DNA of 64,000 nucleotides, from the IMG/VR virus record IMGVR_UViG_3300021440_000013, positions 152,877-216,876 of that record; one strand, written 5' to 3'. Of this stretch, positions 48,466 to 60,820 are shown in pieces (position 1 is the stretch's first letter; each line of letters starts with the position of its first letter). A program made the translations under genes and the position numbers. The notes beneath the pieces are model-generated. The model was not told the DNA's origin, did not search any database, and saw only the letters and a list, made by a program, of their open reading frames with translations.

Positions 48466-49686
48466 CTAGTGTTTAGAGGACAGCGTGAGTGCTCGCAAAG
48501 TCACATAAAGAATGACGGCGGTGCGGGTTGCCATACCGAGTGAGTTATTCGTCTTTCCGTTTGCGGCCTTAATGATCGCTTCGCCTTCCTTACGGATCTC
48601 TAAAAGTTCTCTGTCACTTGAACGGGTCGAGAGGTAAAGATTCTTTAACGTGGTTAAAACACTCGGGTAGTCTTTAAGCTCACTACTTCCTGTTTCATTA
48701 AGAAGATGGAAACTGTGAACGACCACCAGACTTAAAAAAGTGTCGATTCGGTTGTGCCACTTTGGATCGTTGTAGCTCTCAGAGATCCAGCCCAGCGTAT
48801 GAGTCAGCATTCGGTTGCTGGTGTTGGCGTTGATGTCGATAACGACACTCACGAGCTCAGGCTTTACAAAACTGAGTTTATCCATCACACACTGGCGCGT
48901 TAACGTGACGTATTTTTCAACAGAGTTGATTTTCTCACGCATCACCTCTTCGCCTTCGACGTCGAGCATGGTTGCCGAAGTTGAACTTACGCGAGAGCCT
49001 TCTGTATAGGTCTTGTGAAAGACCGCGTAGTAGTTCTTATACAGATCGCGGATGCGATTCTCACTGTCGGAGATCGCATACGTGACACCCATGTCGTCCT
49101 TAAAAAGAAGAAGGGTGTTGTAATGGATCCCCTTGGGGTCTATAAGCTCCTTGGCGCGATATTCCATCACCGCCTTCCATGAGCCTACCCGTTTGATCAA
49201 AAACTTGTTAGAGAGCTCGCCATAGGCCGCCTGAGCGATCCGTGGATCGGCTGGGAAATGGAAGTAATCACTCTGACGAATCGCGATACAGCGATAGAAA
49301 AAGACCAACGCTAAATCATAAACACCCCGGTCTTTTTGACTGGGTGTCAGTTTTGAGCTCGTCAAAACCCGATGGATCATGTACATCAGCGTTAAGTTTA
49401 ACGCATCCGAGGTGATCTTGAATTCTTGTACGATGGTCGTGACGGTCTTAAGTGCCCTTTCAAGCTCCGTATAATCAACGTCCGCTACGTCTTTGTAGAA
49501 TTTAAGCGTATCCGCTACCCGAAAGCGGATCGCGTGAACACCAATTAAGTTACTTCCAAAGAACTCTAGGTGTTCACTGTTTCGATTCACAAACGCGACC
49601 TGGTATTTATATACACGGTCAATAAAGCGTTTATCAAAGACGGTCTCTTTAAACTGCTCATCCAAGACCTCTTGTAGCGTGATCAT
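48466..49686 (-). CDS. conserved jumbo-phage protein (possibly virion-associated)
   Basis: 406 aa; HLEFFGSNLIGV, LSNKFLIKRVGSW. Confidence 0.65.
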   Translation of the reverse strand: MITLQEVLDEQFKETVFDKRFIDRVYKYQVAFVNRNSEHLEFFGSNLIGVHAIRFRVADTLKFYKDVADVDYTELERALKTVTTIVQEFKITSDALNLTLMYMIHRVLTSSKLTPSQKDRGVYDLALVFFYRCIAIRQSDYFHFPADPRIAQAAYGELSNKFLIKRVGSWKAVMEYRAKELIDPKGIHYNTLLLFKDDMGVTYAISDSENRIRDLYKNYYAVFHKTYTEGSRVSSTSATMLDVEGEEVMREKINSVEKYVTLTRQCVMDKLSFVKPELVSVVIDINANTSNRMLTHTLGWISESYNDPKWHNRIDTFLSLVVVHSFHLLNETGSSELKDYPSVLTTLKNLYLSTRSSDRELLEIRKEGEAIIKAANGKTNNSLGMATRTAVILYVTLRALTLSSKH

Positions 49687-50309: not shown

Positions 50310-50383
50310 GGTTTTTCTCTTTCAGTCATGTAAGGTGCGTTTCTCATTCGATCTCACCTTTAGCTTAAATACTACCGATCAAT

Positions 50384-50645
50384 CGAGAGAGGATAGCTCC
50401 AAAGGCTATCCTCTCTCGTGTTAGATGCGTGTTTAGCTGTCTTTTTAATGGTAAATTTATTTTTATCATACTAATACTATGGAAGTTTTGGTTTATATAG
50501 CACTTAAGGGGCTCCGCCCCTTAAGTGCTTAAGTTTATCTCTGTCATGACTCTCTTCCTGTGGGGAAGCTCGTCCTGAGAGTGGTATCTAGAGTCATGGC
50601 ACTTATCTCTAAACCCCTGCCTACGCTCGCTACGCTCGCCTACTA
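50384..50645. other. structured non-coding region between divergent transcription units
   Basis: Hairpins 50384-50418 and 50499-50529, inverted repeat 50542-50601, tandem CTACGCTCG x2 near 50621-50638. Confidence 0.55.
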
Positions 50646-50810
50646 ACTACTGTCCAAATTATATACAAAATGTGAGAACTTTTTTACTCACCCTAAAAAG
50701 TCGATGGGCGCATCCTCTTTCAAGGTTAAAAATAATCACATACATCATTCTTGTAGAGCACGTAAAAGAACAACAAGGAAGACACTTATAAATGTTAAGG
50801 AACATACACC

Positions 50811-51632
50811 ATGGAACACCTCCATTTCTTCTTCCGGAACCAACCGGTTGAACTTACGCCAAGCGCTCGAAGTCAGATCGCTTCATCGATGTCACTGACC
50901 CGTGTCATCCATAACCACTTTGTGTTGAAGTATCAGCACACTCATTTCAAAGACCTCGATCAGATCGACTTTAGTGTCGAGAGTATTGAGGAGTACCTTG
51001 GCATCTTAGGGGAGCTTGAAAACTTTGAGATGCTCCAGTATCAAAGTAAAGAGACCCTTAAAAACATCGCGGTCCTGATAAGCCTGACGTGGGAAGATGC
51101 CGTTGTACGTAAAAAGATCCCTCGCTTTCAAAAGCACCGGGATGAAGGCTACCTTCTTTATTCGTCCATGGATGACTTTCGCATCGAGGCAGACACCCTC
51201 AGTGTTTTTGGACTTGAACCCATCGAACTCCCCAAGGCTTCGATCAAGCTTGCCGGTGAGCCGACCCTCGTTCTTTTCCGAAGACAAAAGAACGAGGAGT
51301 ATTGGGTGACCATTCTGTATGAGCGTCCAAGACCCTTTACCCAGGATTACGCGCCTCTAGAAGTTCAGGAATCTGGTGAGGAGATCCGTTCGCGCTTGCA
51401 AGAGGCTCAGATCACACGAGCCCAGTTGTGGCGAATCTCTGGAAAAAGTAAGAGCCGGGCAAACTGGCCAACTGAGGGTAAAGTGAGTCAGTTAAGACTT
51501 AGGGTCCTTAAGACTATCACGCGTACCCGATCGCCTGTCAAAACAGAATCGGAACCTAAACCCTATGACAACCGAGAGTACGAACGAAAAGGCGTCACTG
51601 AAAGCAGATGTCGATTTAGAACTGCTGCATAG
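50811..51632 (+). CDS. TnpB-derived protein lacking RuvC/Zn-finger
   Basis: ELTPSARSQI...TRVIHNHF, IPRFQK, LAGEPTLVLFRRQKNEEYWVTILYE follow the IS605 OrfB N-terminal pattern; no DLG, no CxxC, no DRDxNA. Confidence 0.55.
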   Translation: MEHLHFFFRNQPVELTPSARSQIASSMSLTRVIHNHFVLKYQHTHFKDLDQIDFSVESIEEYLGILGELENFEMLQYQSKETLKNIAVLISLTWEDAVVRKKIPRFQKHRDEGYLLYSSMDDFRIEADTLSVFGLEPIELPKASIKLAGEPTLVLFRRQKNEEYWVTILYERPRPFTQDYAPLEVQESGEEIRSRLQEAQITRAQLWRISGKSKSRANWPTEGKVSQLRLRVLKTITRTRSPVKTESEPKPYDNREYERKGVTESRCRFRTAA

Positions 51633-52599
51633 AACGGATGTGGTTCGTAATAATCTAAGGGAACTTCATCAAGTCTCAGATTTAAAGCTTGATATGTCTC
51701 CCGAGGAGGTAGGTATCTATCTCTCGAAGATCTTACGCATCGCCAGTGCAGCCAAACAACTCTATTACATGCCGGAGCGCTTTGAGAAGCCGATCGAGAC
51801 GCTCTGTAACATCGCCGATGTGCTTAGCTTGATCTCTAAGCACATCGGTAGTAGTGTCGTTAGACTCATTAGAACAAAAGAAGACACACTTCAATTTACG
51901 GTTGAGTTGATTTATAAACTCATGACGTATGAAGAGCGTAAGGTGCTACGCGACCTTACGCATCTAAGTGTGCGTGAAGAAAAACTCCCTGACACCTCTT
52001 TACGTTTTACGATTGAGACTTTTTTACTTGACCCCCTGACGTTTACGGATGAGGTCAGTAAGGTGTTAAAGCTTTTAGTATGGCTCGATGAGAAAGAAAA
52101 AGATTCTGAACATCAAACGGTGGTTAAACGGTCTATTGATGAGTTTTTGACAATGATCGAAAATTCTAACATGATCGAAAACAATCTTTATAGTAAAACC
52201 AATCTACGCTATGTCCAACCCCTTCCGCCTGAGAGATCTGTGTGGGAGTTTGACGGAGAACGTTTTGTAGTGGTGTGCGTCGCTATGCTTTTTAAAGCCC
52301 CAAAAGAGAGTCAGCGCACCTTGATCGTTTTTCAAGGAAAAGACGGCGTGATCGCTGCCGTCTCAGTGACGTATTGGAATGAGCACTTTGTGCGCGTTGC
52401 TGTTGAGGTGCCGCACGAAGAACCTGGCGAGCCTCCTAAGTCAGGTGAGGAATATATTGGACCTGAGGGTGAGTTCGTACATATCTATGACGTTGTCACT
52501 CGGCGTAGTGGTGAGCGTGTTGTCATCCACGGGGGGCGTGAGGGTGAGCCCCAAAGAACGACCCCGATCCATGAGTTTTTAGGGTTTAAGAAGGTGTAG
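51565..52599 (+). CDS. hypothetical protein
   Basis: 344 aa; helical N-terminus, two small beta-rich C-terminal modules. Confidence 0.6.
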   Translation: MTTESTNEKASLKADVDLELLHRTDVVRNNLRELHQVSDLKLDMSPEEVGIYLSKILRIASAAKQLYYMPERFEKPIETLCNIADVLSLISKHIGSSVVRLIRTKEDTLQFTVELIYKLMTYEERKVLRDLTHLSVREEKLPDTSLRFTIETFLLDPLTFTDEVSKVLKLLVWLDEKEKDSEHQTVVKRSIDEFLTMIENSNMIENNLYSKTNLRYVQPLPPERSVWEFDGERFVVVCVAMLFKAPKESQRTLIVFQGKDGVIAAVSVTYWNEHFVRVAVEVPHEEPGEPPKSGEEYIGPEGEFVHIYDVVTRRSGERVVIHGGREGEPQRTTPIHEFLGFKKV

Positions 52600-59621: not shown

Positions 59622-60815
59622 ATGTCAGGTTCCAAAAAGAACCTGATCAACTACGGTTTTAAGTATCGCTTGTATCCAAGCCATCGCCAGCGCGATCAGA
59701 TCGAAACCCTCTTTGCGGGTGTGCGTCGAGTCCATAATGACTACGTCACACATACCAAAGAGAGCACTGGTCTAGATCACGAAGCCGTCAAACAGTCACG
59801 CCGCCTCACGATCAGGAGTCTGGCGCAGCTCCCTAAGCGCGTGCTTGAAAAGACCCACCAGCTTTTGCAAAATGCTTACGCTAAAGCTGTAAAGCGTAAA
59901 AGACATCTTCCCCAGTTAAAGTCTTGGAGAAGTTTTCAAAGCGCACACTTTGACAAAGGACTCTACGCCATCCATAACGATGGCGTAGAGTTTAGTGGGA
60001 TCGAAGGACGGGTTCGTACGTGTTTTCATCGAGAGATGCTGCCGGGAAAGATCCGCGACTGCTGCTTAAAACGAGACAAGCTTGGCCGATACTTCGTGAG
60101 TTTTAAGCTCACGGTAAGACCGTTTAAACGATCAGGTAATAACGCAGTGGGTGTTGACTTAGGTCTTAAGAGCTTCGCCGTGTGTTCGGATGGGTTTGTA
60201 TTTGAAAACCTAAAACTCAAAAAACGAGCTCAACCTCACCTTCAAAAACGATATGAAACACTAAGGGGAAAGACCGCCGGTTCAAAGAACTTCAATAAAA
60301 CACTCCAAAGCATCCGTAAGCTAGAAGAAAAGGTCGCACAACGTCGACGTCATTATTTTCATGTTTTAACCGCAAAACTCATCCGTGAGAATTGTGTGAT
60401 CGGGCTCGAAGCGCTCGATATCGCCAGAATGATGACTAAGGACGGGAAGCGTAAACTTAAAATCGAAGACGCGGGCTGGGGTTTGTTTAGGAAAATGACG
60501 GTTGAAAAAGCCCGTATCTCAACAGGCACCGCGGTGGTTTTGGCACCACCTGAGTATCCGTCGACTCAGACGTGTTCAGTCTGTGAGAACAAGAGTCCCA
60601 CTAAGATCGCACTGGGTGTGAGTCAATGGCGGTGTCCGTTTTGCGGAACCCACCACGATCGTGACATGAACGCAGCGAATAATCTACGCACCATGGCAGT
60701 TCGCTGGAACACACATCTCAGAAGCAGTATGAAGGGGGTGCGGGTTCTTATAGGTGACCCAAATAGATGGGCAGTCGATTACCACTCTATGGATTACTAC
60801 AACGCCACGTACTGA
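59622..60815 (+). CDS. tnpB: TnpB-family RNA-guided endonuclease (IS200/IS605 OrfB-like), catalytic residues intact
   Basis: FKYRLYP, RuvC-I VGVDLGLK, RuvC-II IGLEAL, CSVC...CPFC Zn finger, RuvC-III HDRDMNAANN. Confidence 0.93.
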   Translation: MSGSKKNLINYGFKYRLYPSHRQRDQIETLFAGVRRVHNDYVTHTKESTGLDHEAVKQSRRLTIRSLAQLPKRVLEKTHQLLQNAYAKAVKRKRHLPQLKSWRSFQSAHFDKGLYAIHNDGVEFSGIEGRVRTCFHREMLPGKIRDCCLKRDKLGRYFVSFKLTVRPFKRSGNNAVGVDLGLKSFAVCSDGFVFENLKLKKRAQPHLQKRYETLRGKTAGSKNFNKTLQSIRKLEEKVAQRRRHYFHVLTAKLIRENCVIGLEALDIARMMTKDGKRKLKIEDAGWGLFRKMTVEKARISTGTAVVLAPPEYPSTQTCSVCENKSPTKIALGVSQWRCPFCGTHHDRDMNAANNLRTMAVRWNTHLRSSMKGVRVLIGDPNRWAVDYHSMDYYNATY

Positions 60816-60820
60816 GTAAG

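Follow-up and report, generated by a model that had tools for sequence, protein, structure and literature searches.

The window analysed here, a stretch of 64,000 nucleotides, is the final 64 kb of a 216,876-bp contig from IMG/VR. Its source is a divergent jumbo phage that encodes the phage tubulin PhuZ, and this PhuZ is only ~34 % identical to that of any deposited phage (tblastn, 174 jumbo-phage records matched). We are concerned with one gene of this phage, open reading frame (ORF) ORF273, an intact frame that starts with ATG and specifies a protein of 273 amino acids (aa). ORF273 heads a rightward block of genes, in which phuZ lies two genes downstream of it, and a leftward block diverges across an intergenic region of ~500 bp (Table 1). 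The first-pass annotation, made from the letters alone, had placed an open gene with a Shine-Dalgarno sequence here, close to phuZ, and the ORF list and the sequence agree with it exactly. Judged by sequence, ORF273 is a member of an old, monophyletic and vertically inherited family of short proteins in an uncultivated clade of PhuZ-encoding jumbo phages. The family, of ~250 aa, is previously undescribed; in the literature we found no description of a TnpB derivative that consists of the REC lobe only, nor of such a gene in jumbo phages. That ORF273 is TnpB-derived, nuclease-less and functional is close to certain. The window also encodes an intact TnpB, called here the resident TnpB, together with three tandem omegaRNA-like units.

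The REC lobe and the missing nuclease half

The N-terminal OrfB/TnpB-like pattern that the first-pass annotation had seen in ORF273 is real: insignificant in pairwise comparison, it is highly significant by profiles and structure. Aligned by BLASTP, ORF273 and the resident TnpB are 24 % identical over 164 co-linear residues, at an insignificant E of 0.11. The ORF273 protein alone has no direct match in Pfam, PHROGs, NCBIfam or PDB sequences, except for a sub-threshold one to HTH_26. The latter, a helix-turn-helix (HTH) of the Cro/C1 type, was rejected, as it scores 14.3 bits against a cut-off of 22, is seen in 1/27 family members, and the structural model has two long helices with no HTH geometry. 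When alignments are compared, the result is different. In hhalign, the alignment of the ORF273 family (27 sequences) matches a TnpB alignment with 99.3 % probability and E 4.3e-20, placing residues 12-186 of ORF273 on TnpB 16-177. Local hidden Markov models (HMMs) of TnpB and of the short family match reciprocally at E ~1e-9 to 1e-10, confined to positions ~13-170, and the TnpB model finds ORF273 itself at E 1.5e-9. The TnpB profile phrog_506 is matched by 19 of the 27 family members, only over its positions ~3-185 of 403; the resident TnpB covers 4-374 of the same profile. Seven members (7/27) match Pfam HTH_OrfB_IS605 and none (0/27) matches OrfB_IS605. At the level of residues, R31/N35, P104 and Y164 of ORF273 align with R35/N39, P97 and Y157, which are invariant TnpB-wide. 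The first two form the R..N pair of REC alpha1; P104 is part of the P.F motif in WED, and Y164 is the Tyr of that domain. The motifs singled out earlier from the letters (R.VHN, P.F/LK and one ending in Y.V) fall on residues invariant in both families. The role of the shared R..N residues is not discussed in the ISDra2 structure paper.

An AlphaFold2 model of ORF273, based on the 27-sequence alignment, has a predicted local distance difference test score (pLDDT) of 85.8 and a predicted template-modelling score (pTM) of 0.80. Its elements follow the order beta-strand, helical bundle, beta-barrel, two long helices and disordered tail, and its folded part amounts to ~240 residues. Present in it is the WED barrel of the oligonucleotide/oligosaccharide-binding (OB) fold, with the REC bundle inserted after beta1. 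The best matches among solved structures are chains of ISDra2 TnpB: 8bf8_A aligns with Z 14.8 and a root-mean-square deviation (rmsd) of 3.0 A over 163 residues, and 8ex9_A, in which only WED/REC is resolved, with Z 14.0 (Foldseek template-modelling score 0.75, rmsd 3.4). The other strong matches are essentially all to Cas12f, Cas12k, Cas12n or Fanzor. The comparisons by profile and by structure that had been proposed at the outset thus both return strong similarity to TnpB. Two uncharacterised proteins in BFVD, A0A1S6L3E0 (Erwinia phage vB_EamM_Yoloswag, 325 aa) and A0A386K639 (Dickeya phage vB_DsoM_JA11, 362 aa), match the ORF273 model over ~180-190 alignment columns only, which correspond to the REC-lobe part. 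To go by the models, they may be other reduced phage TnpB derivatives.

The similarity stops where the nuclease begins. The N-terminal profile alignment ends at TnpB G177, two residues short of the RuvC-I Asp (D179), and at the aligned RuvC-I positions the family alignment has no conserved acidic residue. In the model no beta-strand follows residue 174, so that the five-stranded RNase-H sheet is absent. A CxxC pair, as found in the TNB zinc finger, occurs in 0/27 family members (ORF273 has a single Cys), and alignment, model and Pfam agree on the absence of a RuvC RNase-H domain with its D-E-D catalytic triad. An HMM scan revealed no other TnpB-like ORF and no RuvC remnant in any downstream frame. 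The elements reported as missing in the first-pass annotation (RuvC-I, RuvC-II, zinc finger and RuvC-III) are indeed missing, and a protein that has lost the RuvC-I strand with the remainder of the RNase-H core, its catalytic D-E-D triad and the TNB zinc finger cannot cut DNA.

Beyond the REC lobe there are two helices (183-210 and 219-238), both confident in the model; a remaining basic helix had also been noted from the letters. The second helix includes the invariant R229 and carries a net charge of +1 to +7 in 27/27 members. When the C-terminal part alone is aligned with the TnpB profile by hhalign, it is co-linear on TnpB 187-252 with E 0.068, not significant by itself. Its score of 15.5 compares with 10.5 +/- 1.8 for shuffles and 9.1 for a reversed control; 3 of 300 column shuffles reach 15.5, none of them co-linear (empirical P ~0.01). 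The near-invariant G189 falls on the Gly of TnpB 'SDG', and R229 on the invariant Arg (R242) of 'R.DFLHK'. The VIA-align ranges extend to model residue 243 and chain residue 254-256. The two basic helices are probably relics of RuvC alpha1 and alpha2, an assignment with moderate support. The most economical account, supported to the same moderate degree, is that a deletion of ~10 residues took the RuvC-I strand and that the protein was truncated just before RuvC-II, which left alpha1-loop-alpha2 in place.

Table 1. Features at the ORF273 locus and in the resident TnpB region (window coordinates; dN/dS, ratio of nonsynonymous to synonymous substitution rates)
Feature	Position	Strand	Remarks
Divergent control region	50310..50810	.	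~500 bp; conserved non-coding blocks; alignments of 4 and 7 syntenic loci
Hairpin 1	50385-50417		compensatory changes between close relatives
Hairpin 2	50500-50528		generic GC-rich motif
Stem-loop	50542-50601		close clade only; ~60 nt
Conserved motif	~50728-50748		kept in 7/7 syntenic loci
Shine-Dalgarno-like AAGGAA	50797..50802	+	8 nt 5' of ATG; AAGGA kept in close relatives
ORF273, nuclease-less TnpB derivative gene	50811..51632	+	stop codon included; ORF list, full-length orthologues, dN/dS
Residues 1-175, complete TnpB REC lobe	50811..51335	+	model, Z scores, hhalign, phrog_506 range
Parts of the REC lobe			WED strand beta1, residues 3-13; REC helical bundle, residues 17-100; WED beta-barrel, residues 113-174
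Residues 176-182, linker at position of RuvC-I strand (V-G-V-D-L-G in TnpB)	51336..51356	+	~10 residues appear deleted
Residues 183-238, probable RuvC alpha1-loop-alpha2 relic	51357..51524	+	helix 183-210; basic variable loop 211-218; basic helix 219-238
Residues 239-273, disordered, poorly conserved tail	51525..51629	+	pLDDT <50; length varies in family
ORF344, no known family	51565..52599	+	3' neighbour, overlaps ORF273; adjoins it in closer relatives
phuZ (phage tubulin)	52629..53621	+	third gene of rightward block; phrog_4733, E 1.3e-77
Intact resident TnpB and three tandem omegaRNA-like units	59622..61425	+	TnpB 59622-60815; units 60816-61425

Descent, selection and gene order

By an exhaustive profile search, the short family comprises 24 representative clusters at 50 % identity, each 225-276 aa long; a profile word-index search with the 27-sequence alignment gave no further members. 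Orthologues of ORF273 at 94, 82 and 60 % identity are full length, and no stop or frameshift was found in any orthologue examined. The dN/dS of ORF273 is 0.13 against the related locus L001 and 0.20 against L002, values within the range of the neighbouring ORF208 and above those of PhuZ, polymerase and TnpB. With an open frame under purifying selection, ORF273 is no pseudogene.

In a tree of REC lobes, a single bipartition (support 100/99) separates the 27 short proteins from 36 TnpBs, among which the resident TnpB stands. The TnpB sample covers only the neighbourhood of the resident TnpB, so that a single origin of the family is consistent with the data, short of proof. The REC lobe of ORF273 shows no greater affinity to the resident TnpB than to the other TnpBs in the sample. 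A recent truncation of the resident TnpB is ruled out by the tree together with the identity of 24 %. The description of ORF273 as a second copy related to the resident TnpB, offered in the first-pass annotation, could not be upheld on the same grounds: there is no phylogenetic closeness between the two, and ORF273 belongs to a vertically inherited family of its own.

The gene is found in the same genomic slot in all seven lineages with readable context, with protein identity down to ~21-27 %. The order is the 406-aa phrog_2921 gene, a gene of ~200 aa, an intergenic region of ~490 bp, in some cases one or two further genes, then the short gene, and an ORF that overlaps or abuts it; PhuZ comes next wherever the contig reaches far enough. 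The short gene is accordingly the first, in some lineages the second or third, gene of the phuZ-containing block. Where its identity has fallen to 21-27 %, PhuZ keeps 57 % and the 406-aa protein 63-68 %. The 406-aa gene itself (48466-49686, - strand) occurs in 291 deposited jumbo-phage records (phiKZ-like, EL, OBP, Goslar and others), carries the annotation 'virion structural protein' in a small number of these, and serves as a good synteny anchor here.

On the other side, the final 22 codons of ORF273 overlap ORF344, which has no Pfam, PHROG or NCBIfam match. Its slot is taken by a 159-aa gene in L008 and by a poorly aligning gene in L006. The idea that ORF344 is the split-off NUC/RuvC lobe was ruled out (hhalign probability 0.05 %). 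A complex prediction of ORF273 (residues 1-242) with ORF344 scored 0.22, the mark being 0.32, and counts neither way.

Among 50,697 deposited phage records (megablast, tblastn) no family member was found, the only matches being the N-termini of genuine TnpBs. Nor did the family HMM find a match in RTH11, FLC9 and RP12, the cultured phages that are closest, when their syntenic regions were scanned. These phages have a hypothetical gene of ~267 aa near phuZ on the opposite strand (L143 6036-6836 in RTH11; L144 2430-3233, gp13, in FLC9; L145 2750-3553, ORF016, in RP12). The ~267-aa genes lack HMM similarity to the family and may be positional analogues or unrelated.

The probable control region and the search for a guide RNA

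The intergenic region upstream of ORF273 has counterparts in six other loci (L001 4023-4476, L002 4950-5444, L003 2313-2818, L005 1-512, L006 4647-5133 and L008 1667-2125). It is conserved to an unusual degree, and though the proteins of these phages are only 20-60 % identical, its blocks always come in one order: hairpin 1, GGTAAA..., hairpin 2, a structured block, TCGYT-CGYTCG, TAACTAC, ATATA, GTGAAAA and CCACATACATC. This region probably controls the two divergent operons, and we infer a link between it and the ORF273 protein. A promoter-like motif had been reported near 50735. A motif does lie there and is kept throughout the syntenic loci (Table 1); its promoter nature finds no backing in a sigma-70-type match, of which there is none on the + strand. 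The upstream motifs were also not found as recurrent promoter elements within the window. The hairpin-2 motif TAAGGGGCTNCGCCCCTTA (50503-50525) was met in 13 viral-contig and at least 120 metagenome-contig stretches, none encoding the family. Since it occurs in >130 unrelated contigs without the gene, the hairpin is not locus-specific; TAAGGGGCTNCGCCCCTTA is a GC-rich stem of wide occurrence and may be a common terminator.

TnpB and TldR systems encode their guide RNA (gRNA) at the 3' end of the gene or directly beyond it. No adjacent gRNA with an omegaRNA-like scaffold was found at the ORF273 locus. The 3' flank of the short gene is an overlapping ORF (by 20-68 nt) in 6/7 lineages, with a gap of 4 nt in L005, and no covariation-supported structure was detected at the 3' end of the gene or downstream of it. 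An omegaRNA in that place, transposon ends and signs of mobility are all absent for ORF273, the synteny of which is fixed in seven lineages. Upstream, the seven loci yield no consensus RNA structure on either strand, the region has no similarity to the TnpB array, and its stem-loop is short and not omegaRNA-like; there is no Rfam match in the window. A guide encoded in cis is not supported, given the ORF-filled 3' flank, the lack of conserved structure and of an Rfam match, and the presence of three scaffold copies only.

These three copies belong to the resident TnpB, an enzyme with Pfam OrfB_IS605, TNB and HTH domains (NCBIfam guided_TnpB, E 3.7e-54). It carries D179, E263 and D348 as well as C318, C321, C338 and C341, all invariant in the 36-sequence TnpB alignment, and its dN/dS is 0.075. 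In three related phages (window, L001 and L146) it comes after a divergent family-B DNA polymerase, directly so in the window and L146, whereas in L001 an additional 143-aa ORF separates the two. It looks immobilised and domesticated. The array consists of three units of ~215 bp, spaced by 218 and 212 bp, each with a conserved scaffold of ~150 nt, a variable segment of ~29 nt and a T-run, and to judge from this layout of the sequence it looks like an omegaRNA array. The variable segments have no match elsewhere in the window, and those of units 1 and 3 form a small hairpin. No further scaffold copy is present in the 217-kb contig. The resident TnpB and the short gene co-occur in 3/3 phages in which both regions are visible, the array being readable in the window only.

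Proposed role and comparison with known systems

In TnpB, WED and REC hold the duplex of the transposon-adjacent motif (TAM), and WED together with RuvC alpha1/alpha2 holds the RNA scaffold, the alpha1-loop-alpha2 element contacting omegaRNA stem 1 and the triplex (PMC10097598). In the binary complex of TldR, alpha1/alpha2 is the only protein part ordered by the gRNA (TldR preprint). By analogy, the ORF273 protein is probably a non-catalytic nucleic-acid binder. That it would bind DNA sites, either as protein only or with assistance from RNA, and act as a regulator is a more tentative suggestion, to which we give even chances at best. Overall, the explanation that we find best, with modest confidence, is that ORF273 is an anciently domesticated, nuclease-less TnpB derivative working as a non-cutting, sequence-reading factor, and within it a protein-only or loosely RNA-assisted reader of DNA sites is slightly favoured over an RNA-guided, TldR-like factor. 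In such a mechanism the WED-REC cleft would read a short motif in duplex DNA and the basic C-terminal helices would clamp the nucleic-acid backbone. The protein would thereby occupy specific sites, for example in the divergent control region that heads its own operon, and its occupancy would modulate phage gene expression or DNA transactions. A role for an RNA cofactor would be possible, though none is encoded at the canonical place.

Several points weigh against this explanation. Binding to DNA or RNA is deduced from fold, homology and basic helices, the charge of the REC lobe is near-neutral (-6 to +6), and the alignment behind the alpha1/alpha2 assignment is weak (hhalign E 0.068; empirical P ~0.01). 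TnpB depends on its RuvC domain for the heteroduplex channel and for half of its RNA surface (PMC10097598), so that what is left without this domain may have a weak or altered grip on nucleic acids. The control region is separated from the short gene by one or two genes in L006 and L008, and the statistics of its stem-loop are weak (two compensatory pairs, both from one sequence; fold z-score -0.33). Finally, the family evolves fast, which would fit an arms-race role too.

The alternative that survives best is an RNA-guided repressor of the TldR type, whose guide would be encoded elsewhere, for example in the resident array in trans, and which would bind TAM-flanked DNA and block transcription. 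We regard it as unlikely. The lineage of origin and the nuclease loss do parallel those of TldRs; WED is retained, and probably so are alpha1/alpha2, the helices that the gRNA orders in the TldR binary complex; the resident TnpB, fixed behind the DNA polymerase, co-occurs with the short gene in three phages; and omegaRNA arrays are known for exapted TnpBs (PMC10691335). However, no gRNA is seen at the canonical place, where the 3' flank is filled by an ORF and neither a covariation-supported structure nor an Rfam match is found, the upstream region is unlike the array, and the 217-kb contig holds no extra scaffold copy. Missing as well is the RNase-H core, by which the heteroduplex channel is formed and the pseudoknot sandwiched. 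Guide scaffolds are usually protein-specific, yet the REC lobes of ORF273 and the resident TnpB are distant, being 24 % identical and phylogenetically not close. The family is also spread far wider than the sub-clade known to carry TnpB. The likening to TldRs and the use of array RNAs in trans, both put forward in the first-pass annotation, are thus left unsupported, with the RNase-H core gone, no guide downstream and no affinity to the resident TnpB. A related proposal goes further and would make ORF273 the smallest natural RNA-guided DNA binder, a REC lobe with alpha1/alpha2 clamps that takes its guides from elsewhere, such as the three-unit array. By analogy with its relatives this is conceivable, and we think it improbable. 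If it were true, the RNase-H core would be dispensable for guide loading and target binding, and the array guides would steer gene expression or DNA handling in jumbo-phage infection.

The fold might also have been re-used away from nucleic acids, in a structural or scaffolding role in the virion, in the phage nucleus or in the PhuZ spindle, perhaps together with the product of ORF344. The gene does lie between phuZ and the block with the phrog_2921 gene of 'virion structural protein' annotation, it overlaps ORF344 and has diverged to a similar degree in the close clade, and its N-terminal lobe is near-neutral in charge. Retention of the TnpB-wide invariant R..N, P.F and WED Tyr and conservation of the basic helices speak against such a role, and we give it a small chance.

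A slim chance, too, is all that we allow for a decoy or dominant-negative protein, an empty REC lobe that competes for TAM or protospacer-adjacent motif (PAM) sites or for guide RNA and so tames the phage's own TnpB or blunts a host attack of the Cas12/TnpB type. Its architecture is that of the target-recognition half of an RNA-guided nuclease, it co-occurs with an intact TnpB, and it combines fast evolution with retention (21-27 % identity where PhuZ keeps 57 %). However, a gene that stays in one place and is inherited vertically throughout a deep clade would seem to serve a core function and not to be an accessory anti-defence gene, and there is no co-evolutionary closeness to the resident TnpB. 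Furthermore, PhuZ-encoding (chimallivirus-type) jumbo phages are generally known to shield their DNA from DNA-targeting nucleases. A decaying TnpB fragment or a chance resemblance, which the insignificant BLASTP match (E 0.11) and the lack of direct Pfam, PHROG, NCBIfam or PDB-sequence matches might suggest and of which decay had been named as one outcome that would undo the earlier reading, is excluded for practical purposes by dN/dS of 0.13-0.20 with no stops or frameshifts in orthologues, a deep family of constant length, strong profile and structure statistics and the absence of a RuvC remnant in any downstream frame.

A sequence-reading, non-cutting TnpB derivative would add a candidate regulator to the conserved and little-understood phuZ block of uncultivated PhuZ-encoding jumbo phages, and if its binding to DNA or RNA is specific, it would represent a very compact natural binding module. 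The family raises the question of what the REC lobe of TnpB/Cas12 does alone: read a TAM-like motif, hold RNA or act as a decoy.

Among known systems, TldRs are the closest in kind. Both are TnpB descendants that have lost the nuclease, are immobilised and have acquired a new conserved gene neighbourhood (10.1101/2023.11.30.569447; 10.64898/2026.09.22.753285). Some TldRs are phage-encoded, and REC and WED are kept in both, here probably with alpha1/alpha2 as well. Of the features that define TldRs, descent from TnpB, an inactivated RuvC and association with a non-transposon gene (here the phuZ block) all hold for ORF273. However, TldRs keep a folded, degenerate RuvC domain with the RNA-binding interface and have their gRNA immediately downstream (10.1101/2023.11.30.569447; 10.64898/2026.09.22.753285), whereas ORF273 is without the RNase-H beta-sheet including the RuvC-I strand, has ~240 folded residues and no adjacent gRNA that could be found. 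Since no adjacent gRNA was found, and since of the RuvC-fold domain only a probable alpha1-loop-alpha2 relic is left, ORF273 should not be filed as a TldR. By analogy it would work most like one, yet it is more radical, and functionally it would be no TnpB either. Where inactivated TnpBs and TldRs have been surveyed, the changes described are decay of the active site and truncation at the C terminus, and not loss of the whole RNase-H core (10.1101/2023.11.30.569447; 10.64898/2026.09.22.753285; PMC10691335).

With the canonical TnpB of IS200/IS605 elements (ISDra2; PDB 8h1j, 8bf8, 8exa and 8ex9), ORF273 shares the WED and REC fold (Z 14-15) and the invariant residues of REC alpha1 and WED. It differs in having no NUC lobe (RuvC and TNB), 3' omegaRNA or transposon context, and in being vertically inherited. 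Cas12k of the CRISPR-associated transposon (CAST) V-K, Cas12m and the sigma-factor-associated dCas12f/TnpB are alike in that the same scaffold binds without cutting (PMC10691335; PMC13472631). Cas12k chains also give the longest structural alignments to the ORF273 model (200-210 residues including the C-terminal helices, at rmsd >5 A). Unlike ORF273, all of these proteins have kept their RuvC-fold domain in full, together with a guide RNA locus or CRISPR array, and none consists of the REC lobe only (PMC10691335; PMC13472631). The known exaptations of TnpB, namely Cas12 effectors, Cas12k, TldRs and sigma-factor-associated dCas12f, thus all keep the RuvC-fold domain; in the ORF273 family it is the recognition lobe, essentially alone, that has long been kept under selection as a fixed gene of a virus lineage.

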